Sequence record: LC768500.1
Length of the DNA: 64,000 nucleotides
Direction: 5' to 3' (one strand)
Below are positions 131 through 38,846 of the stretch, piece after piece. Position numbers and translations under genes: made by a program. The notes under the pieces were generated by a model. The model ran no database searches. It had not been told where the DNA came from and worked only from the letters and a program-made list of their open reading frames with translations. Each line of letters starts with the position of its first letter. Position 1 is the first letter of the stretch.

Positions 131-160
131 TATTCCTCTACCCACGTGGGTAGAGGAATA
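131..160. terminator. Intergenic inverted repeat, likely intrinsic terminator
   Basis: TATTCCTCTACCC-acgt-GGGTAGAGGAATA (13 bp) followed by a T-rich tract; near copy of the hairpin at 9495-9526. Confidence 0.75.
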
Positions 161-195
161 ATAACGCTTTTTTATTTTTTAAGGTTATCTCACTC

Positions 196-234
196 ATGGC
201 TAAAATTTATTTCACTTACTCTTCTATTGTATAG
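196..234 (+). pseudogene. Dead 5' remnant of thymidine kinase (MAKIYFTYSSIV*)
   Basis: RBS-like TAAGGTT at 180-186, ATG 196; 7 of first 10 aa and 26/33 nt match the tdk start at 1228 (MAKVFFTFSSM). Confidence 0.8.
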
Positions 235-259
235 TAGAAACGCTTATGGGGAAATAGAA

Positions 260-1228
260 ATGCCGAAAATTAGTGGCTACAAAGAACATCCGGTAATAAA
301 AAACCTTTTCATCCATCCTACGGAAGATAATCACGTCCTGTATGTTAGGAAGAAAAAAGTATCTCGGATAAAGACCCATGTCGGTAAACGCGGATATGTG
401 ATTTTTACTATGTGGTTAAATGGGAAATCCAAGGGTTTTCGCTTCCACAAATTGAAAGCTGAAACGTATCTCAAGAAACCCAGTTCAGACCACACCCTAG
501 TTGTCAATCATAAGGACCATGTTAAGATCAATAACGATCTCGATAACCTAGAATGGGGGACTCAGAAAGAGGATGTCGATCATTCATTAAATATCCGTCA
601 AAAACTTTTTCCCCTCTATCGGATAATGGATTTGACTACGGGGAGATGGTGTACGGCCGGCAGTCGTAAAGGGGTGATAGAAATGCTAGCTTGCACCCAC
701 CGACAACTCTCTAACCATATTAAAGACCCTCGCTATCCATTGCTCTTCAAGTGGGAGGTAACAAGGAGTTCCACTTGGAATCTTTCAAAAGATGACGTGG
801 GTAGATATAACCCACGAGAGCTTCTTCCTTATGTGGTAGAAAAGAATGGTGTCGTTTTTTACCTGGCGACATTAGCTGAAGTTGGTGAATTGACAAAGAT
901 TACTAAATACACGATTACAGTTGGTTTAAAAAATCAGCCGGTTCTGCATGCCAAGGGATTCAGTGTTCGGTTCATTAATTCCTATGAAGAATGGATGAAA
1001 ACTGTTATTGAGAAATCTTATATTGATACCATGTTGAATAGAAGTAAAGGAAATAAAAAACAGATTGAGGTAATAAACACTCTTACGAAGGAAAAAACCA
1101 TGCTGAACGGAATTATAGAGTTAATGGAGTTGACTAATTATTCACGATCTACCATCGACCGGGCAATGAAAAGTATGCGTGAAGACGGATGGGTGACTTT
1201 CAAAAATCTAAAGATAAGGTTTATATAA
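260..1228 (+). CDS. Free-standing HNH homing endonuclease
   Basis: VVNHKDHVKINNDLDNLEW HNH motif; the track's GTG at 146 lies inside a terminator hairpin, so ATG 260 (MPKISGY) is preferred; stop overlaps tdk start (TAATG). Confidence 0.85.
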   Translation: MPKISGYKEHPVIKNLFIHPTEDNHVLYVRKKKVSRIKTHVGKRGYVIFTMWLNGKSKGFRFHKLKAETYLKKPSSDHTLVVNHKDHVKINNDLDNLEWGTQKEDVDHSLNIRQKLFPLYRIMDLTTGRWCTAGSRKGVIEMLACTHRQLSNHIKDPRYPLLFKWEVTRSSTWNLSKDDVGRYNPRELLPYVVEKNGVVFYLATLAEVGELTKITKYTITVGLKNQPVLHAKGFSVRFINSYEEWMKTVIEKSYIDTMLNRSKGNKKQIEVINTLTKEKTMLNGIIELMELTNYSRSTIDRAMKSMREDGWVTFKNLKIRFI

Positions 1229-1815
1229 TGGCTAAGGTATTTTTCACTTTCTCTTCGATGAATTCTGGGAAGACCACTGGATTGTTGCAATCGGCTTACA
1301 ATTACGTTGAAAGAGGAATGTCCGTCTTACTTCTTAAACCGAAACTCGATAATAGAGAAGGGGACGATCCGATAATTAAATCAAGAATAGGATTAGAAAG
1401 CGAGTGTGTTTTTATTCCTGATGACGGGGATGAATTAGTCGACCTCATTCATAATAATAAAGGTGTTTCGGCGATATTCATCGACGAGGTTCAGTTCGTT
1501 CCAGTGCGAGTGCTTAGCGCGATCATGGTAATGTGTGACACCATGGATATTCCTCTTCTCTGCTACGGTCTCCGTAACGCTTATGATGGTAAGGGATTCC
1601 CGGGATCTGATTTCTTATTACGTCACGCTGATAAACTGGTTGAATGCAAATCGATTTGTTGGTGTGGTAAAAAGGCGACCCACAACATGATGGTTGTCGA
1701 TGGGAAAGTGGTAAGGGAAACCACGTCAGGGGGAAATATGGTTGTCGGCGGTAATGAACTGTATCACGCCGTTTGCAGGTATCATTTCTTCGAAGGCAAA
1801 TACAAAGAAGATTAA
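1228..1815 (+). CDS. tdk: Thymidine kinase
   Basis: SMNSGKTT P-loop, FIDEVQF, CYGLR, Zn-binding CWCG...CRYH; start ATG 1228 with TAAGG RBS inside the HNH gene end. Confidence 0.95.
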   Translation: MAKVFFTFSSMNSGKTTGLLQSAYNYVERGMSVLLLKPKLDNREGDDPIIKSRIGLESECVFIPDDGDELVDLIHNNKGVSAIFIDEVQFVPVRVLSAIMVMCDTMDIPLLCYGLRNAYDGKGFPGSDFLLRHADKLVECKSICWCGKKATHNMMVVDGKVVRETTSGGNMVVGGNELYHAVCRYHFFEGKYKED

Positions 1816-3013: not shown

Positions 3014-3220
3014 ATGTTGTATGACGCAATTGAAGTTTGTTTTATCGTAATCTCCATTCTTTCCTTTATCTGGGTAATGAAGAAGAAAGGAACTGGGGCG
3101 ATGTTAATTATTGCGTTTTCTATTGTTGTCGTGGCAGGATGTCGTTATCAAGATAACGCCGATACCGAACAAGCTTTAGAGCATCCAAAATATACCAAAT
3201 CTAACTGCGGCTGTTTATAA
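3014..3220 (+). CDS. Small membrane protein / possible lipoprotein
   Basis: AGGA RBS; two hydrophobic segments; internal MKKK...VVAG-C lipobox-like signal. Confidence 0.6.
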   Translation: MLYDAIEVCFIVISILSFIWVMKKKGTGAMLIIAFSIVVVAGCRYQDNADTEQALEHPKYTKSNCGCL

Positions 3221-3232
3221 GAGGAACTGATT

Positions 3233-3526
3233 ATGTTTTATGATTTAGTCAAGGTTTGCAAGGAACTCGTATTTTCTCATACCTTCAACGAAAGCAATCC
3301 TGACAAGGGTTACTTCGATACCTGGAAGTGGCGTAAGTTACTCATTAACGTGGTAAGCGTAACGTATCACACCCCTAAGCTTGCCGCGCTCAGTCCGCTC
3401 TTAAAGGCTATTTCCAGTAAGCAAGACGGGCTGACAATTTCCCCACAAACCGACAGCCAAGGACGGGTCACGCGAATTACGGTGACACACAATAATAAAT
3501 CAGTGGGTTTCAGATTCAAACGTTAA
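3233..3526 (+). CDS. Hypothetical protein
   Basis: GAGGA RBS, tight operon spacing. Confidence 0.65.
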   Translation: MFYDLVKVCKELVFSHTFNESNPDKGYFDTWKWRKLLINVVSVTYHTPKLAALSPLLKAISSKQDGLTISPQTDSQGRVTRITVTHNNKSVGFRFKR

Positions 3527-3539
3527 AGGAATAATCGTC

Positions 3540-4112
3540 ATGGGATACATCGAGCTTAAACACGGAACTGATAAAGACTACGTTCCCTACCGCACCAATG
3601 ACATCTACGAATTAGATGAAGATATCACCGTCTTAACCGACGATACTCGGGTTATCGACGAAAATAAAGAAACCTACTTTTTTGTGCCAGGGGTGGACGC
3701 AGAAAACATCAAGGTTAAGGTCGGTGACGTGAACCAGTTTTTACTTTTCTGGCCCGTGAAGGAAGGGGTTGAAATCAGACTTGTTTCGTTTGGGACTGGT
3801 AGAAAAACCACAAAAGTGGTTGGGTTCCTCATGACCGAGTTTCATCACCATTCCATTTACGCCAGCGTGTTCTCGTCCCTGCTGCATCGAGAATCGAAAA
3901 TGAATTTCCGCAGTAATAAACTGGCTACAGGGATCATGTGTAAATTACTTCACCGGTGCCTCAAAAGCTTTAAGCTCAAGCATCCTTCGCTCGGACGTAT
4001 CTATCTCGATATCGTATCTGATAACGGTGTTATTAAGTACGTTAACCAACACGGTAATTTTAGTGGATTGTATTATCGATTCAATCCAGGATTTAAACCA
4101 GAATTACGCTAG
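3540..4112 (+). CDS. Hypothetical protein
   Basis: AAGGA RBS, operon spacing. Confidence 0.7.
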   Translation: MGYIELKHGTDKDYVPYRTNDIYELDEDITVLTDDTRVIDENKETYFFVPGVDAENIKVKVGDVNQFLLFWPVKEGVEIRLVSFGTGRKTTKVVGFLMTEFHHHSIYASVFSSLLHRESKMNFRSNKLATGIMCKLLHRCLKSFKLKHPSLGRIYLDIVSDNGVIKYVNQHGNFSGLYYRFNPGFKPELR

Positions 4113-4732: not shown

Positions 4733-5986
4733 GTGCACGATGATTTTTATGACCGCCATGACCACGTTTTCGTTTTCGTGCAAAAATTTGATTTAGCTCA
4801 TCCTGAACTAATAGACCGAACCGTAGAGGAGAAATTCGAAATTTATACTAAGGACTATCCCGATTATGATTGTTGGGCTCAACTGGTTTATTATTTCAAG
4901 GACGGCGGGGTGTTTTCACCAGAAGGGGTGAGACTTTCAATGAGGGGGATGGTGGTTTCTCCGTTGAAAAGACTCAACCGACCCATCCACGAAAGAATAA
5001 ACGAAATGGTGTTCAGGGAAGGGGCGAAAAAACAGTCAGGTTATCCTAGGATAATGATCGGCGATTTAGGACTTTCAATGCACAGACTGATCGCATCTAC
5101 TTTCATAAAAAGACCCGATCATTTAAAGCTTATCCCATTTATGCTTTTACACGTCAATCATAAAAATGGGATTAAGAACGATTACAGACCTAATAACTTA
5201 GAATGGACTACTCCTAAGGAAAACGCGATCCATAGCGCCATGACGGGACTCACGCCACAGGGACTAGCCCACACAAAAACAATATCGGTACTCGGGTTCT
5301 TCTCTTTACCAGGAAAGTGGTTCGGGAAAACCATTTCATTTAGTGGAAATAAAGAGATTAATTCCGCAGAACTGTTTTCTCAAACAATGATACACGAAAA
5401 GGTTAGGGAAGGTGGGTTGTACAAGGGTTTTAAGTGGATTAGCGTATCTGAAGAAGAGTATAACAACCATCCACACGGTTTAGAAGATCCAGAATTTAAG
5501 AGATTTATCGACGAAGGGGGAAACACTTACCTTGATGAAAGAACTAATTTTCTTATAGGGACAGTGATTCACGAATGCGCTTATAAAGGGCTGCAATTTA
5601 TTATTTTCGGTGAAACAATGATCGAGCGTAACGGATTCCCGGCTAATCGTTTAATGGAGTTTTATAAATCCAAAGAATCGGATTCTTATTTATCAAAGGG
5701 ATGTCTTTTTGTGAGGGGGGATCTGTCCGACCTTGAAAAATTTCCGCGTGGAATACCCGATGAGCTGGTAACCATTTTATCTAGGGAGAGGGGAGATAAG
5801 TTCTATCCCGTGATCGCCAATAAAGATGGAGAGGATAAGTTATTTGCATCTAAAGAAGAGTTATCCGCGAACGGGTTTATTTATAAAGAGGTTAAGAAAA
5901 ATATACGGGGAGAGACGGGAAGTCATAGGGGTCACGCATTCAGATGGGCGGAACGATTATCGGGGTCGTTCCAACCGTCAGACTAG
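4733..5986 (+). CDS. Free-standing HNH homing endonuclease
   Basis: HRLIASTF...HVNHKNGIKNDYRPNNLEWTTPKENAIH; GGGAGG RBS before GTG. Confidence 0.85.
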   Translation: MHDDFYDRHDHVFVFVQKFDLAHPELIDRTVEEKFEIYTKDYPDYDCWAQLVYYFKDGGVFSPEGVRLSMRGMVVSPLKRLNRPIHERINEMVFREGAKKQSGYPRIMIGDLGLSMHRLIASTFIKRPDHLKLIPFMLLHVNHKNGIKNDYRPNNLEWTTPKENAIHSAMTGLTPQGLAHTKTISVLGFFSLPGKWFGKTISFSGNKEINSAELFSQTMIHEKVREGGLYKGFKWISVSEEEYNNHPHGLEDPEFKRFIDEGGNTYLDERTNFLIGTVIHECAYKGLQFIIFGETMIERNGFPANRLMEFYKSKESDSYLSKGCLFVRGDLSDLEKFPRGIPDELVTILSRERGDKFYPVIANKDGEDKLFASKEELSANGFIYKEVKKNIRGETGSHRGHAFRWAERLSGSFQPSD

Positions 5987-21005: not shown

Positions 21006-22058
21006 TCACTCTCGCTCAATTCTTTTAATAAAATAATTCTTATACATTCCATTGTTCCGATAAGACCGATTCAGGTTAGCCGAGTTGGTTCCGAAATTGG
21101 TTAACTCTATTGTTCCGGTTAGTCTGGTGACGCACTTAGTGCGTTTATGAGTCAATTCCCATATCACTCTGTCAGACCTATTCGACTTCCTCCCGGTTCT
21201 ATCGTAATTATAATCTCTTATTGCATTTATCAAATTCTGCTCGGGATCTTTATAGTGTTTGGTGTACTCTTCCTTGGTTACCTCTTCCCATTTACATCCC
21301 TTATAGGTTTTAGCTTTACCTGTCCTAATGGCGTGAAGATTACGATTATCCAATCCAAATTTAGCGCATTGTTCCTTGCCGCAAACGTATATCACTCTTT
21401 TCTTGAATCCTGGGATATCAATCACAGTACCTTTCATGGGAATGACGAAAGGATGCGACAAGTGCTTATGGGATACAAGGAGGTTATTCTCTTTGGCATG
21501 TTGCTTGTTCTGTTGTGGCGTGGTCCATTCTAATGAATTTACGTCGTTATCATCCTTTCCCTTTAAGTGGTTAACTTCAAGTTCAGAATAATCGTAAAGA
21601 TTGAGCTCATCAGGTTTTGGAATCCAGGACGACGCAACGATCCTGTGCACCATCATTACGTATCCTGATTTCATATATACTTTATAACCAAAATGGCTAA
21701 ACGTTCCTTTAACCATTTTGTACGTTCTTAAATTAAAAATTCTACCTCTGTTACTCACCCAAATATAAGTAAAAGATGTTGATGTTTTCTTATTAATATT
21801 GAGGTTCTTCGGGCTGTACGGAAAATAACTTGCCGGAACCCAATACTCTGATCTGGGATCTTCTTTTAATAATTTTGTTAACTTGGCATAATAAGCTTTC
21901 TTACGTTCTTCGTGCGATAAAAGATTCAATAAAGCGTTAGCCTTTTTTCCCATCGCATCAATAATAGATTTATATTCTTTAACAAATAACGGGAGATTTC
22001 CTCTAGCTATTTCATCCCATTCTTCTTCAGTTCTTATTCGCGGCGGTCTGATTTTCAT
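21006..22058 (-). CDS. Free-standing HNH homing endonuclease
   Basis: VSNRGRI, HRIVASSW, EVNHLKGKDDNDVNSLEWTTPQQNKQH; GGAG RBS favours ATG 22058 over 22091. Confidence 0.85.
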   Translation of the reverse strand: MKIRPPRIRTEEEWDEIARGNLPLFVKEYKSIIDAMGKKANALLNLLSHEERKKAYYAKLTKLLKEDPRSEYWVPASYFPYSPKNLNINKKTSTSFTYIWVSNRGRIFNLRTYKMVKGTFSHFGYKVYMKSGYVMMVHRIVASSWIPKPDELNLYDYSELEVNHLKGKDDNDVNSLEWTTPQQNKQHAKENNLLVSHKHLSHPFVIPMKGTVIDIPGFKKRVIYVCGKEQCAKFGLDNRNLHAIRTGKAKTYKGCKWEEVTKEEYTKHYKDPEQNLINAIRDYNYDRTGRKSNRSDRVIWELTHKRTKCVTRLTGTIELTNFGTNSANLNRSYRNNGMYKNYFIKRIERE

Positions 22059-32985: not shown

Positions 32986-33159
32986 GGCGACCAGTTGAAT
33001 TCTAATTCAATCAACGGAGAGGATGCTATTGCTGAAGCTAAAGCTTTAATGGGCAGACGCGATTACTATATCACCGGCACGGGGCAGTTCCTTTACAGTC
33101 CAACGGTGGAACCTCACGAATTCTTATTCCGAAATCTCAGTAACGGACTCAACCTATGA
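32986..33159 (+). CDS. rpoC: vRNAP beta' exon 2 (not in ORF track)
   Basis: GDQLNSNSINGEDAIAEAKALMGRRDYYITGTGQFLYSPTVEPHEFLFRNLSNGLNL*; spliced product 537 aa; stop overlaps beta ATG (ATGA). Confidence 0.88.
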   Translation, partial: GDQLNSNSINGEDAIAEAKALMGRRDYYITGTGQFLYSPTVEPHEFLFRNLSNGLNL

Positions 33160-36100
33160 GCGTATTATACCAACAGTTCTTCCGTAATTTTGTTCTTAGG
33201 AAAAAACAAGAAATTACAAATCCTAAGTTTCACCATCTGACGGATATGGTGTTGCCGAGAGAATCGGTAATGATGTATCTACCGAAGACGCAAGAAGATA
33301 TCGGCCCAAGTACCGAGGAGCCCTTAATAGGGACTTACCCTGATGGGGTTAACATTTATTTCAACAGTCTTTATATAACCCCCATCGGAAGAACTCGACC
33401 CGTTCCCTTTAACGAAAAGCAATCTATACAGCTTTATCGTAAAAGCCATTTCAAATACAACTGGGCGAGGACGCTGTCCAACTACCTGAGCCGTCGTCAG
33501 GAACTGTTGGTAAACAACATAGCGATGGGACCCCATCGTCACCGTTATGTCTTTACTCGCTTTGTTCAGTTCGAACGAGCTTACAACCAACTGGCTTCTG
33601 GGATTGAAGCCGTTAAGCAAATGAGTAAGGAAACGACCCGCAATCAATACTGGCGAATAGAACTTCCTCCAAGCATCCCCGATTATCGTCAACTGCTGGT
33701 AGCCGTCGATCATTATAAGAAGGCGTTCAAAGACGGTGTTTATACCACCACTGACAATCAGGCTGTACTCCCGTTTAAGGGCTACGGTTCTTATTGGATC
33801 ATGGATTGGTACCTCTTCTTGATAGGCGAAAAGAACTACAGTCTGTTTAATCGCTTAGATAAAGAAGAAATGGATAAACTCCACATCATCTTTAGTCATA
33901 ATGGACTCAGCTGGGTAGTTAACCTTGGTATCGTCTCTCAATGGATGGAAGAACTTAACGACAAGCACGGCAATCCCACCAGTATGCGTGTTAACGCGGC
34001 TAAACGGTTCCTGCTTGGATTTAGGGCTCTGATAGCGGGCGGCACGCTAAGCGAAACCATAGAGGAGAAATCTCATGCCGCTGAGAATGTCGGATTGGGT
34101 ACTGGAACGCCAGAAGAGGAAAGAAGAAGCCAGGAAGCTAATAAGGAATCAGAAGAAGAACCGCTGGATCTCGATGAGTCTGAAGAGATTACTGATCAGT
34201 CTGTTACTATGCTTGATCTTTTCATGGGCAGCAAAAAGGCTGATACAGAATCTGATGATGACCAAGGAGGAGAGGATTCAGGAGGAGCTGATGAGAATCA
34301 CGGAGAAGAGTGGGCTGCAGCGGTCGACGATGAATTACTTTATAACGCCGAAACAGAAGGATTAGGGGAAACCAAGAAAGTTATTTTCAGTACCCCAGAA
34401 TCTGGTATCCTGAGAGCCTTAGAGCAAAGAGCCAAGGCCGGGACATTAACTGTTGCGGAACAACGTTATTACACTAATCTCGCGCAATCATACAAAACGA
34501 TCAAAATGCCTAACGGTGAAAGTCTTGAAAGTTTTGTTAAGATCGATCAGGCCAAACTCCGCCACCTTCCTGCTAAAATTGCTCCTGAGATGAGAGGGAT
34601 CATCGACCCTTCTCAGCTACAAAGTAGAGCGACCAATCTTAAAACGAAATACTCTGAAGAATTCCTTAATCGGGATATAGCCGGGATGATACTGAACATT
34701 CAGAACGCCGGTATCGTTTTAACCGACCTGAAACGTGAACGTATCGTCAATGCGGAATCGGCTTACGACGTTTATACCATGAACGTCCATCCTGTTGGCG
34801 GATCGCCTAAGACCGCAATGTTCCGCATCCCCAAAATTGACAAAGACGGAACCTTCACTGTCGATGGGGTAAAACAACATCTTCAACTTCAGCGTATGGA
34901 AATACCAATTCGTAAGATAAACTCTGAGCAGGTTGCTTTGACGAGTTATTATGACCGCAAGATCATGATGTCTCGTTCGACAAAGGTTGCAGATGATTAC
35001 GGATTGTGGCTGAACAAACAACTTATTCTGTTGGGTGAGGCCGGTAAAGTATCTGGGGTGTTGGGCGATGTCTATAATCGTAGTTACGCTGTTCCTCGTA
35101 CTTATTCTGCGTTAGCCAAGCGGTACCGAACATTAAAGGCTGGTGGGATTGAATTCAACTTCGATCTTTCTAGTCTTGTTGGCTCAGAGAAAGAAATCAA
35201 GAAACTGATTTCTCCTAACTGGGTTCCGGTGGCTAAAGAAGGTGACGGCTTCATCTTTATGGATGATGGCGGTAACCTTTACAAAGATAAGACACACATT
35301 GGTTCTTTCGAAAGCCGCTGTGGAATTGACACGACGAAGGCCCCAGTCGATATCGTTACGGTGAATGTAAACGGATACGCTTTCCCTATCGGTGTAGTGC
35401 TCGCTTACTACTTCGGATTCGACGAACTTCTTAAAGCACTCAATGCTGACTATCGGACCGTTCCGGCCGGTGAGAAAGTTCGGATGGGTCAGGACGAATA
35501 CGCGATAACCTTTAACGACGAAACGCTTATTTTCAACAGACGGGATAGTTTAACCGCACTTATCATGGGCGGATTCCGGAAGTTAGCGAATCTCAGTAAC
35601 TTCTCTCGCTATGACCTAAACACAAAAGGTGTATGGGTGCCGGCTATCGGGGATAAGAAAGTCAAACCTGGTCATTTTGATGAAATGCGTTTGATGTTCG
35701 AAATGTTCATCGATCCGATCACCAAATCTGAACTGGTTAAAAGGGGCTATCCGACTGAGCTTCATTATCTCATGATCGAAGGCGTGAAAATGCTGAACAC
35801 CGATCGAACTGCTCACGAGATAGAATTAACTGAGCAACGTTTCGTTGGGTATGAACGTTTTGCTGGCCGAGTCTATAATGAGATTGTTAAGTCAACGCGT
35901 CAATTCAGGAATAAAGGTAACGACAAACGTTTCACCTTCGATATGAACCCTGAAGCGGTTATCATGAGTATCATCACCGATACAAGTGTAAACCTAGTCG
36001 AAGAGGTTAACCCCATCCACGAAATCAAAGAACAGGAAGTTGTTACCTTTGGTGGTACTGGTGGGCGAAGTGAAACGACAATGGTCAGACGTACACGTGG

Positions 36101-36303
36101 TCAGCAAGAGAACTATGCTGGGGTTATCTCCGAGGCTGGTAAAGACTCCGGTAAAGTTGGGTTCGTGAGTTACTTAACGAGCAACCCTAAGATCGCCGAT
36201 TTCCGTGGTAACGTCGACCTAAGCATGCCTGACACTCTGAGCGGCAGACTGTCGGTAACATCCAACCTTTTAGCTCACTCGACCTCCGATGACCCAAAAC
36301 GGT
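33156..36303 (+). CDS. rpoB: Virion RNA polymerase beta subunit N-terminal part (phiKZ gp178-like), exon 1
   Basis: GTFTVDGVKQ, EVVTFGGTGGR, SEAGKDSGKVG, ends STSDDPKR. Confidence 0.88.
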
Positions 36304-36317
36304 TAACTGTAATATTT

Positions 36318-36350
36318 TCCTGAGTACAATATTATGTTGAGACTCAGGAG
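36318..36350 (+). promoter_or_regulatory. RBS-sequestering hairpin with TATG in loop
   Basis: TCCTGAGT (36318-36325) pairs with ACTCAGGA (36342-36349), covering the AGGAG RBS; TATG at 36333-36336. Confidence 0.6.
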
Positions 36351-36359
36351 CAAATTAAG

Positions 36360-37412
36360 ATGAAACCAATTGAGTGTAAAGATTTTCCAGGGTATTACGA
36401 GATACCCAATTTTTCCAAGTACTGCATTAATAAAAAATCAGATATTATTCATAAACGCAAAAACAAAAAAATCAGACAGTACGACGTTAAATCTTCTGTG
36501 ACGTCCAGGCCAGAAACCGGGTGTTATAAAAGAGTGACGATGTATTCTGATGATAAAAAACTCCACGCCTTTTCGGTCCATCGGTTAATGGGCTTGGTGT
36601 TTAAACATCCTGGTGCCGGGTTTCACTCTCTACAGGTCCACCACGGAGATGGGATAAAATTTCATAACGACATCGATAACTTAGAATGGGTTACACCCAA
36701 GACCAATATTGTTTTAGCAAACGATTATTACATGGGTAAAGCTAAAATACCTGTCCAAGCTAGGTCTAAAAACGGTGAAGTTCTAAATTTTTCTAATCTA
36801 AGTGATTGTGCTAAATTACTCGGGATCCATAGGACAACCCTTATCTCCAGATTAAGTACGTTTGGAGAAAAGTTTGTTCACCCAGAGGGCTATCAACTGA
36901 GGTACGGAAATTCCGATAAGCCATGGGTTGCACCAGACGAAGAATCAGCTAAGGACTTAGATGAGTTTTACTCGTCACCCATTTTGGTAAAAAATCTCAA
37001 CACTGGCGAAGTGAGGGAATTTAAAACAGCCAAAGGCGTGATGGAATTAATAGTAAGATCTCCGTCAAGCATAAGTACTTTGAGTAATGATTCGACTCAA
37101 CCCATTGTGATGGGTAAAGATAACGTACCGTACATTCTCATAAAAAAATATTCTGGGGTCGATTTCAGGAGAGTTGACGATCCAATGAATGATTTTGTCG
37201 AACAACAGACCAATACCAGAACGGTAGTTGCGACGAATGTTACGACTAATGAAAAGAGAGTTTATACGACCGCGCAGGCGTGCGCATCTGATTTTGGAAT
37301 AGGAAAAACTACACTTAATTGGCGTCTTAAGAAACCCATCCCTGGTGTTTTCGACGGATGGATTTTTAGATATTACGAGGCCCGTATGGGAGGAAACACC
37401 CATACGCAATAA
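36360..37412 (+). CDS. Intron-encoded HNH homing endonuclease
   Basis: FPGYYEI N-terminus, VHRLMG, QVHHGDGIKFHNDIDNLEWVTPKTN; repeated putative DNA-binding modules C-terminally. Confidence 0.88.
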   Translation: MKPIECKDFPGYYEIPNFSKYCINKKSDIIHKRKNKKIRQYDVKSSVTSRPETGCYKRVTMYSDDKKLHAFSVHRLMGLVFKHPGAGFHSLQVHHGDGIKFHNDIDNLEWVTPKTNIVLANDYYMGKAKIPVQARSKNGEVLNFSNLSDCAKLLGIHRTTLISRLSTFGEKFVHPEGYQLRYGNSDKPWVAPDEESAKDLDEFYSSPILVKNLNTGEVREFKTAKGVMELIVRSPSSISTLSNDSTQPIVMGKDNVPYILIKKYSGVDFRRVDDPMNDFVEQQTNTRTVVATNVTTNEKRVYTTAQACASDFGIGKTTLNWRLKKPIPGVFDGWIFRYYEARMGGNTHTQ

Positions 37413-37737
37413 TCTTTAATTGTTCTGGGACGATCTCGAAGACTCTCATACCAAAGCGGAATACGAAAGTATAGACGTCATGGTTTTAAAAGTTGAGAAG
37501 AGAGACGATCTAGCAGCGAAGCACCTACGTATCTTCGAGAGAAGAGATAGGGTGAACGTTCAACGACTATGGGTGAAACTCCCAGTAGATTTTACATGAA
37601 GTAATTTCGAAACAGGATTCCCTTCGAGTGAGCTGAAGAAGCTCGATACTCATGGGTGAAATATAGTCTGCTCCCTACGGCGACGTAGCGGCGGGTGTCA
37701 TAGCACACCGGGTTGAAGGAAGCAACCGGACATAAGG

Positions 37738-38846
37738 CTCTGTTCTCCGGGGTTCAGCAAAGCCAGGGGGTGTCTGCGACTAACTATCAGACCAACTGGT
37801 TACGTACCGGGGATGAATTGGTTATCGCACACCGGACATCCGAGCTTTATTCTAAACCAGCTAAACTCGACGGTAAAGTAATAAAGCTTACCAAAGAAGG
37901 CTTGGTGGTCGAATACAAGGATGGAACGACGGACAGTTATCCGTTAGGCTTAACCATCGGCAGTGCGTCTGGTGAATTCCACAGACACACAAGAGTCACT
38001 GATTTAAAAGTTGGTGATAGTTTCAATGCCGGGGATATTATCGGTTGGGACGAAATGTACTTTGAAAGGGATTTGGCTAACCCTAATCAGGTGGCGTGGA
38101 AATGCGGGGTAATGGTGAGGATTGCCTTTGTTGAGAATCAGTTCACGTTTGAAGACTCCATTGAGGTTTCTAAAGACTTCGCTGAGCAGACGAAAACGCC
38201 TTATTTGAAGTTGAAAGAATTCTCTTTAGACTTCGAACAAACTCTCGTCCCTCACGTAGAAGTCGGGTCGGAAGTCGACATGGACGCGATTTTATGCTCG
38301 ATAGAGGATCCCCACGTAAGTGGTCTGGACGATTCTGATGACACTTTCTCAGGATTAGAGCGTTTAGGGGTTAAACAAATTCGGTCTAACCATCATGGCC
38401 GTGTTGTTAAAATTGAGTGTGTTTATAACGGTTCAATTGAAGACATGTCAGATAGCCTGAAAGGGTTTGTGGCTAAGTTAGATAAAGAACGTCAACAGCT
38501 CAATAAGGTCACTCATACCGGGATCGTTAACGGTAACGTTGGGGGAAACACGTATGTTAAGAAAGCCAGTGTTGAACCTAATCGGGTTACGGTTAAAATC
38601 TTTATTGAGGATCTCAATAGCTCCGAAACCGCCGATAAATTTGTGGTCGGTAACCAGATGAAAGGTACCGTGGGGAATATCGTGAACTACACAATGCGTA
38701 CACTGGATGGTCGTATTGTCAAGATTCGATTCTCATTTAAATCGATGTTCAACCGTATGGTTCTGAGCTTACGAGATAAAATGGGCATCAATGAAGTTAA
38801 CGCCAACCGCACTTCGGCAGCAGTTAAAGCTTTCAGAGGAAAATAA
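37738..38846 (+). CDS. rpoB: vRNAP beta exon 2
   Basis: ENQFTFEDSIEVS (RpoB GYNFEDS) and KFVVGNQMKGTV (GDK..GRHGNKGV); spliced product 1418 aa. Confidence 0.88.

Follow-up and report, generated by a model that had tools for sequence, protein, structure and literature searches.

An intron-less HNH gene in the 5′ end of the thymidine kinase gene of Klebsiella jumbo phage phiKp_32 probably brought a replacement gene start

Introduction

How can a homing endonuclease gene settle within a conserved coding sequence and leave the host gene in working order? Homing endonuclease genes usually spare the host gene because they lie between genes or inside an intron or intein that splices itself out; rarely, they split a gene whose products reassemble. 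The tdk locus of Klebsiella phage phiKp_32, a 251-kb Miami-like jumbo phage, raises this question, as an HNH endonuclease gene there separates an apparent start of the thymidine kinase gene tdk from the gene itself. We analyzed a 64-kb stretch of this genome (LC768500.1 from position 186001), hereafter called the window, in whose numbering all coordinates are given unless stated otherwise. The best explanation for the locus as a whole, to which we assign a probability of roughly 0.85, is an intron-less HNH cassette that replaced the start of tdk with one of its own. The paper describing phiKp_32 does not mention the locus.

Results

The tdk locus contains two gene starts

The initial annotation, made from the sequence of the window, had placed the HNH gene in the 5′ end of tdk, between an N-terminal stub and a rebuilt start. 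On re-reading positions 1–2400, the coordinates, the stub, both copies of the ribosome-binding site (RBS), a TATG motif, the overlap of the two genes and the similarity of the two starts were all found as described. The main features of the locus are as follows.

180..186, + strand: ancestral tdk RBS, TAAGGTT, which now serves the stub only; 9-nt spacer; the same in 10/10 HNH-less loci
196..237, + strand: stub (ancestral tdk start), a 12-codon open reading frame (ORF), MAKIYFTYSSIV, followed by TAG TAG (232–237)
225..1256, + strand: insert of 1,032 bp, the length by which filled sites exceed empty ones, placed by alignments, repeat spacing and mismatch maps
260..1228, + strand: HNH gene of the homing endonuclease type, 969 nt, 322 aa
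1215..1221, + strand: element-borne tdk RBS, TAAGGTT, within the last HNH codons and 6 nt before the ATG
1228..1815, + strand: tdk, which begins MAKVFFTFSSMNSGKT and encodes a 195-aa product
1228..1257, + strand: element-borne tdk codons 1–10 (MAKVFFTFSS); codons 3–5, AAG GTA TTT, are always element-specific, and codons 7–10 differ between element lineages
1258..1815, + strand: resident tdk body, beginning with Met11 and the P-loop (MNSGKT) and ending with the stop codon

The placement of the insert slides within TCTTC, which is common to both ends (220–224 = 1252–1256). Upstream of it, the stub consists of codons 1–10 of a resident tdk allele, designated C below, and then reads ATT GTA TAG TAG. 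At the other end, the HNH stop codon TAA (1226–1228) overlaps the tdk ATG (1228–1230) as TAATG, and the new Shine-Dalgarno (SD) sequence, ATG and ten codons run in frame into codon 11, giving the 195-aa product with a full TK domain (Pfam TK over residues 3–187, E 1.7e-34). The two 33-nt starts are alike at 26/33 positions. Elsewhere in the 64-kb window no match at 22 or more positions occurs, while 20 shuffled windows peaked at 20–21, and an independent repeat search also picked up the pair at a spacing of 1032 nt.

Both genes have wrong starts in public annotations. The HNH gene of phage KPN8 is called from a GTG at 146, through the terminator and the stub in another frame, and tdk of both phiKp_32 and KPN8 is called from an ATG at 1189, 39 nt within the HNH ORF, which makes it 208 aa instead of 195.

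Uninterrupted relatives begin tdk at the stub position

Six complete related genomes were compared. The HNH gene is present in phiKp_32, Raoultella phage VB_ZK_P1, KPN8 and BUCTxx100, and absent from Miami and YC1. Protein clusters of HNH and tdk at 90% identity led to 14 further metagenome/SRA contigs, giving an HNH-less set of 10 loci (Miami, YC1 and eight metagenome contigs) and an HNH-bearing set of nine (the four complete phage genomes and five independent metagenome/SRA contigs); a tenth HNH-bearing contig begins within the HNH 3′ end and holds only part of the locus. Because the same structure recurs in four complete genomes and five independent contigs, the architecture is not an assembly artefact. 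BUCTxx100 (L006; OR529409.1) is recorded as a Stenotrophomonas phage, a surprising host given that it is 94–99% identical to the Klebsiella phages over the locus.

All 10 HNH-less loci have the tdk ATG at the position of the stub ATG, preceded by the identical TAAGGTT and 9-nt spacer. In Miami and YC1 tdk reads MAKIYFYFSSMNSGKT, and the N-termini in the HNH-less set read MAKIYF(YF/YY/TY)SSMNSGKT, which defines three 5′ alleles: A (YF), B (YY) and C (TY). The HNH-bearing loci, 9/9, carry instead the stub, the 969-nt HNH ORF and a new MAKVFF start; in the partial tenth contig the rebuilt start reads MAKVFFTYSS. Filled sites (9–10) and empty sites (10) represent a presence/absence polymorphism at one fixed position.

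Three sequence markers distinguish the two starts. At codons 3–5, native genes and stubs without exception have AAA AT(T/C) TAT, and rebuilt starts always have AAG GTA TTT. The spacer between RBS and ATG of the rebuilt start is TAT(A/T)TA in all HNH-bearing loci versus ATCTCACTC in native alleles. All nine stubs end TCT ATT GTA TAG TAG, where native alleles have TCG ATG AAT. An HNH-less allele C, as in L018, is the same as the window stub through nt 29 and matches it at 31/33 positions, compared with 28/33 for the new copy. The proposal that the stub is the ancestral tdk start is therefore borne out by the 10 HNH-less loci in position, RBS, spacer and codons 3–5: uninterrupted relatives match the stub, not the downstream copy, and do not leave the two on an equal footing. 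The stub had also been called dead, a description that holds as far as the function of tdk is concerned.

The rebuilt start was probably imported with the HNH gene

The origin of the downstream start is best seen in a near-isogenic pair, the filled locus of KPN8 and the empty locus of contig ERZ23873213. To the left of the insert there are no mismatches over ~740 nt, up to nt 26 of the stub, and the mismatches within the stub (nt 27, 30 and 33) all lie at the junction. The rebuilt start differs from the empty twin at 7/30 nt, after which 0/466 nt differ; over the whole tdk body the difference is 1/558 nt. The native tdk end has been kept as a remnant that is closer to relatives than the inserted copy is (three junction mismatches versus 7/30).

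Since drift of a local duplication cannot account for 23% divergence between flanks with 0%, the alignment indicates that the SD sequence, the spacer and the ten codons were imported with the HNH gene in the 1,032-bp insert and are not a drifted local copy. The near-isogenic pair thereby substantiates the earlier suggestion that the element supplied a new RBS and N-terminus. The comparison of filled and empty loci also implies that in KPN8-type loci a single crossover joining the stub to the new copy could not restore the native sequence, so the empty allele is not a simple deletion product and gain of the cassette is favored over its loss. We regard the structural part of our interpretation, an insertion together with an imported start, as very probable.

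Expression signals around the stub, the HNH gene and tdk

Two further features may bear on expression.

133..180, + strand: hairpin and T-rich tract, with an 11-bp stem and an ACGT loop (133–158), 3′ of an upstream 85-aa gene; part of the resident genome, outside the insert
245..248, + strand: TATG, whose G248 lies 12 nt 5′ of the HNH ATG (260)

The hairpin and T-tract region is the same in the HNH-less Miami and YC1, and the Miami record annotates a terminator there. A simple terminator scan missed the hairpin at 133–158 because the T-run begins more than 2 nt past the stem. Miami-like jumbo phages transcribe with their own RNA polymerases, and a scan for sigma-70 promoters and terminators at the locus gave no informative result.

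The sequence TTATGGGGAAATAGAAATG around the TATG is invariant in 9/9 copies; the 3 preceding nt are variable. TATG is the core of phiKZ late promoters, necessary but insufficient (PMC4666361), and by analogy with phiKZ alone the motif at 245–248 is a candidate late promoter of the phage's own non-virion RNA polymerase, with a putative start at G248. Upstream of the ORFs of the window, TATG is not enriched (12 observed versus 16.9 ± 4.1 expected). Over the whole window it is markedly under-represented: the + strand has 171 occurrences and the − strand 144, where base composition predicts ~302. Such a deficit would fit avoidance of a promoter core.

Translation signals differ among the three ORFs. 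The HNH start has a poor SD-like sequence, GGGG(A), and lies 22–25 nt from the stub stop. RNA structure around the stub and the HNH start is nothing special (z −0.10), and the tdk initiation regions, native (z +1.4) and new (z +1.6), have less structure than shuffled sequence. As the initiation region of tdk is unstructured, the new start may act on its own SD sequence. Coupling of tdk translation to that of the HNH gene through TAATG, as had been supposed, is possible but unneeded, and independent initiation is equally possible.

The stub itself might be a translated leader ORF, through which the strong native tdk RBS delivers ribosomes to the weak HNH start 25 nt on and sets HNH expression. 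This role would add to our model rather than compete with it, and the poor SD-like signal and the 22–25 nt from stop to ATG speak for it, as do the stub ORF, RBS and double stop, which are intact in 9/9 copies. These copies are, however, too alike to reveal selection on a 12-codon ORF, the region between stub and HNH gene lacks special RNA structure, and the conserved TATG, if a promoter, would yield transcripts without the stub. We consider the leader function doubtful.

The HNH protein is maintained and belongs to two diverged lineages

The 322-aa protein matches Pfam HNH_3 with 25.7 bits against a gathering cut-off of 24.8 (E 8.7e-6), and PHROG 59, ‘HNH endonuclease’, over residues 30–311 (E 3e-20). 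Among solved structures, residues 33–110 match PDB 1U3E (E 1.6e-6) with H..N..N aligned (vvnHkd..kiNNdldNLeW). 1U3E is I-HmuI, the nicking HNH endonuclease from the DNA polymerase intron of Bacillus phage SPO1. H84, N96, L97, E98 and W99 are invariant in the element copies and two paralogues, and the motif is identical in 9/9 loci. Outside this region, a helix-turn-helix at about residues 269–313 gave sub-threshold matches only, and the AlphaFold model has a mean predicted local distance difference test score (pLDDT) of 38, reaching 54–81 per 10-residue block only from residue 261 on. The ORF is intact at 969 nt in 9/9 loci and the ratio of nonsynonymous to synonymous polymorphism (pN/pS) is 0.13–0.15, which together indicate that the protein is being maintained by purifying selection.

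The nearest full-length relatives, 24–28% identical over 93–96% of the protein, lie inside the RNA polymerase beta genes of phages EL and SaP7, and the family is otherwise tied to interrupted RNA polymerase genes. The window holds other genes of this kind. A 417-aa ORF with an HNH_3-like motif at 4733–5986 is free-standing between a gene on the + strand and one on the − strand and is 41% identical to the tdk HNH protein over 58 residues, and a weak tblastn similarity to the HNH motif on the minus strand at 21495–21647 (E 0.02) may represent a fourth HNH gene, either degraded or distant. We searched around the two other HNH genes of the window for repeats of the stub-plus-rebuilt-start kind and found none.

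The element copies fall into two types. Type 1 (phiKp_32, VB_ZK_P1 and two SRA contigs) occurs in an allele-C context and has ACT TTC TCT TCG as new codons 7–10; type 2 (KPN8, BUCTxx100 and three SRA contigs) occurs in an allele-B context and has AAT TAC GCT GCG. Judged by the stub and the downstream sequence, the cassette sits in at least two resident alleles, C for type 1 and B for type 2. The HNH genes of the two lineages differ with a pS of 0.21, whereas the flanks of phiKp_32 and KPN8 are 0–1% apart over much of their length. Lineages so much more diverged than the flanks of their carriers are the pattern expected of an element that moves between genomes.

A co-conversion tract was considered in the comparison of phiKp_32 with Miami, as tdk nt 1228–1600 are 12–35% diverged and the surroundings 0–2%. 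We dropped this candidate because HNH-less contigs have the same tdk body; several allele types of the tdk body are found both with and without the HNH gene. On these sequences, the divergence of 1228–1600 is best read as ordinary allelic mosaicism at a recombination-prone locus, unlinked to the element.

Similar mosaicism is seen elsewhere. Short blocks of 22–35% divergence lie between otherwise near-identical genomes in the chaperonin gene (window −800 to −700; L002 700–800) and in mid-tdk (1501–1600), which suggests fine-scale mosaic recombination in this phage group. At about 3200–3900 of the window (L004 4797 onward), VB_ZK_P1 is 40–57% different from phiKp_32 and has another, longer gene annotated, in what looks like a replaced cassette.

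The same data allow that the HNH gene no longer homes and is a domesticated or resident gene, its patchiness being due to normal homologous recombination between Miami-like phages that co-infect a cell. In favor of this, several tdk body alleles occur on both sides of the polymorphism at what is a mosaic hot spot, and the near-isogenic pair has no co-conversion tract. Set against this are the intact ORF under purifying selection with its conserved catalytic motif, the two element lineages far more diverged than the carrier flanks, as for a mobile element, and an insertion point that adjoins the most conserved part of the gene, as is typical of homing targets. We therefore regard loss of homing as unlikely. 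On sequence grounds, the balance tips moderately towards an active homing nuclease with the target predicted below.

No donor with this tdk start was found by tblastn or blastn of HNH and tdk in 50,697 phage records, nor in IMG/VR or a set of 5.8 billion proteins. An exact 18-mer of the new start gave 25 matches in metagenome contigs, all by chance and with no tdk following, and VFF is absent from the tdk N-termini of the more distant jumbo phages Totoro, pTD1, AH04 and N1M2 and of one IMG/VR contig.

Neither a local duplication nor an intron accounts for the two starts

The 33-nt repeat might be a long target-site or tandem duplication of resident sequence made at insertion, with the seven differences arising later. 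Both copies share TAAGGTT, ATG GCT AA and TTTC..T..C.CT.C.AT, and codons 7–10 of the type 1 new copy resemble those of the resident allele. Neutral drift, however, cannot give the distribution of differences in KPN8, in which 7/30 nt of the new start and none of the adjacent 466 nt and ~740 nt depart from the empty twin. Moreover, the spacers are unequal (6 nt versus 9 nt), and the same four changes in codons 3–5 are fixed in both element lineages despite the pS of 0.21. A local duplication is very unlikely on these grounds, and an imported start remains the preferred explanation.

The HNH ORF fills the insert except for ~60 nt, ~30 nt per side. An Rfam scan of 1–2400 returned no group I or group II intron model even at E ≤ 10; as a positive control, a scan of the whole window at gathering thresholds found RF00028 at 37354–37690 with 51.9 bits. 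That the stub is an exon 1 spliced to codon 11 across a group I intron encoding the HNH protein, with an incidental duplicated start, is still less probable: group I introns usually have U at the 5′ splice site and a terminal G, all stubs do end codon 10 in U (TCT versus native TCG) with G as the base before codon 11, and the closest full-length HNH relatives inside the EL and SaP7 RNA polymerase beta genes and the paralogue next to a genuine group I intron in the window would suit it, but no model was detected where the RNA polymerase intron was, ~30 nt on each side leave no room for a ribozyme core, and there would be no explanation for the in-frame SD sequence, ATG and ten tdk-like codons that ten loci conserve.

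The control intron belongs to a 1.4-kb insertion (36302–37736) in an RNA polymerase beta-like gene, which splits the ORF at 33156–36323 from the rest of the gene, resuming at ~37737 (listed ORF 37713–38846). Both phiKp_32 and VB_ZK_P1 carry this insertion; KPN8, BUCTxx100, YC1 and Miami lack it. Besides RF00028, it contains a 350-aa HNH ORF (36360–37412) that is 32% identical to the tdk HNH protein over the first ~100 residues, and its junctions suggest splicing to K-R-S-L where KPN8 has K-R-A-L.

Discussion

We propose that an intron-less HNH cassette of 1,032 bp entered tdk at codon 10/11, directly before the P-loop codons. In type II thymidine kinases the first ten residues form the strand leading into the P-loop, and distant relatives and the element copy alike retain the pattern x-x-x-(L/I/V)-(Y/H/F)-F-x-x-(S/A)-(S/A/T)-MN-(S/A)-GK. 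An insertion at codon 10/11 would deprive tdk of its first beta-strand; a gene starting from Met11 would for this reason be dead, and the substitute start would rescue it. The 3′ end of the cassette brings a foreign SD sequence, an ATG and ten codons joined to resident codon 11. The whole kinase would be made from this new start, which lies within the 3′ end of the HNH gene and on which tdk would depend. What is left upstream is the resident RBS with codons 1–10, now a 12-codon ORF, both of whose stop codons are derived from the cassette.

During co-infection, the HNH protein may nick or cut the 5′ end of an uninterrupted tdk, and recombinational repair would copy the cassette in. The left homology would comprise ~26–29 nt of the stub and the DNA upstream, and the right homology tdk from codon 7–11 on. 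The predicted recognition site spans approximately codons 3–12; with the right half missing from the stub and the left half recoded in the new copy, carrier copies would be immune. The variable codons 7–10 may mark the zone of the right-hand junction or of later conversion, and the divergence of the repeats would limit loss of the HNH gene by repeat-mediated deletion. The cassette may have originated in a relative with the HNH gene directly upstream of a somewhat divergent tdk, entering by an illegitimate left junction at TC-TC-AT microhomology.

Several points weigh against this model. The cleavage target is a prediction from the sequence. The near-isogenic pair has no co-conversion beyond the cassette, and the polymorphism could reflect ordinary recombination of co-infecting phages. 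In type 1 and in the JGI variant, the new copy is only 4–5/33 nt from the native target, so that carrier immunity is not assured, and I-HmuI reportedly nicks DNA both with and without an intron. Outside the HNH motif, support for the domain architecture is weak, given the mean pLDDT of 38. Finally, the donor genome was not found in the searches described above, so the account of the origin is one that we infer.

A more far-reaching version would make the cassette a self-contained ‘gene-start replacement’ homing element, with a ~30-bp site over tdk codons 3–12, immune carriers, a translated stub that feeds the HNH start, and a penalty on imprecise loss. We hold this version as tentative and lean against it. 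If it were true and general, many ‘hypothetical’ endonuclease genes that overlap phage gene starts could hide the same architecture.

The case is neat and well documented, and it overturns nothing. Its value lies partly in the natural near-isogenic filled and empty alleles and in the two diverged lineages in two alleles, which would make the target, immunity and homing advantage testable in a nucleus-forming jumbo phage. In nucleus-forming jumbo phages, intron-borne endonucleases are already known to affect the competition between co-infecting phages. Besides the usual ways in which homing endonuclease genes spare their hosts, the tdk locus would represent a fourth in phage, namely landing in a coding sequence with a spare RBS and N-terminus. 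In the searchable literature on phages we found split genes and embedded promoters as precedents, and no duplicated or rebuilt gene start.

Among known systems, I-HmuI is the closest solved relative of the tdk HNH protein, sharing an HNH_3-type N-terminal catalytic domain (residues 33–110) with His/Asn/Asn. I-HmuI is intron-encoded and has 174 aa, whereas the tdk HNH protein is 322 aa long, is unrelated to it in the middle and C-terminal part, and is encoded without an intron; nicking is assumed. The closest full-length relatives are, like the tdk gene, HNH genes of chimallin-type jumbo phages: EL gp25, the SaP7 gene and the window paralogue at 36360–37412. The EL and SaP7 genes lie inside RNA polymerase interruptions and the window paralogue adjoins an Rfam-detectable group I intron, in contrast to the intron-less tdk element.

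Endonuclease genes also split phage genes, as mobE does in nrdA of Aeromonas phage Aeh1 and mobA with T4 genes 39 and 60; gene 43 is also split (PMC2988022, PMC10448857). Like these insertions, the tdk HNH gene sits in a critical conserved part of a gene for nucleotide metabolism or replication, without intron or intein and with the function kept. In those split genes the halves are both translated and come together again as one enzyme, whereas the upstream piece of tdk amounts to 12 residues and the downstream ORF alone covers the TK domain. Free-standing homing endonucleases of T4-like phages (Seg, Mob; intronless homing) include some with promoters for the downstream gene embedded in the endonuclease ORF (PMC2988022). 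The tdk element resembles them as an intron-less phage gene whose coding region harbors signals for the expression of the host gene that follows. These genes lie between genes, whereas the tdk cassette lies inside a coding sequence and a duplicated gene start compensates; duplication of host coding sequence is not mentioned in that review (PMC2988022).

The closest analogue is found in fungal mitochondria, in the mobile ORFs (mORFs) of Allomyces macrogynus atp6 and of Glomus atp6, atp9, cox2 and nad3 (PMC3630166; also PMC7487136). mORFs bring a foreign C-terminus, and the native one persists as a remnant that still agrees with relatives (PMC3630166, PMC7487136). In both cases an intron-less endonuclease ORF lies inside a coding gene, a foreign, more divergent gene end is joined in frame, and the native remnant stays nearby. 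The mORFs replace the 3′ end, encode LAGLIDADG or GIY-YIG endonucleases and reside in mitochondria, whereas the phage element replaces the 5′ end and encodes an HNH protein. Because it is the 5′ end that is replaced, the phage cassette must also supply an RBS and a start codon. The tdk cassette thus works like an mORF, of which it is the 5′ mirror image while standing outside that set of elements, and this mirroring of the fungal C-terminal replacement suggests that the two solutions arose independently.

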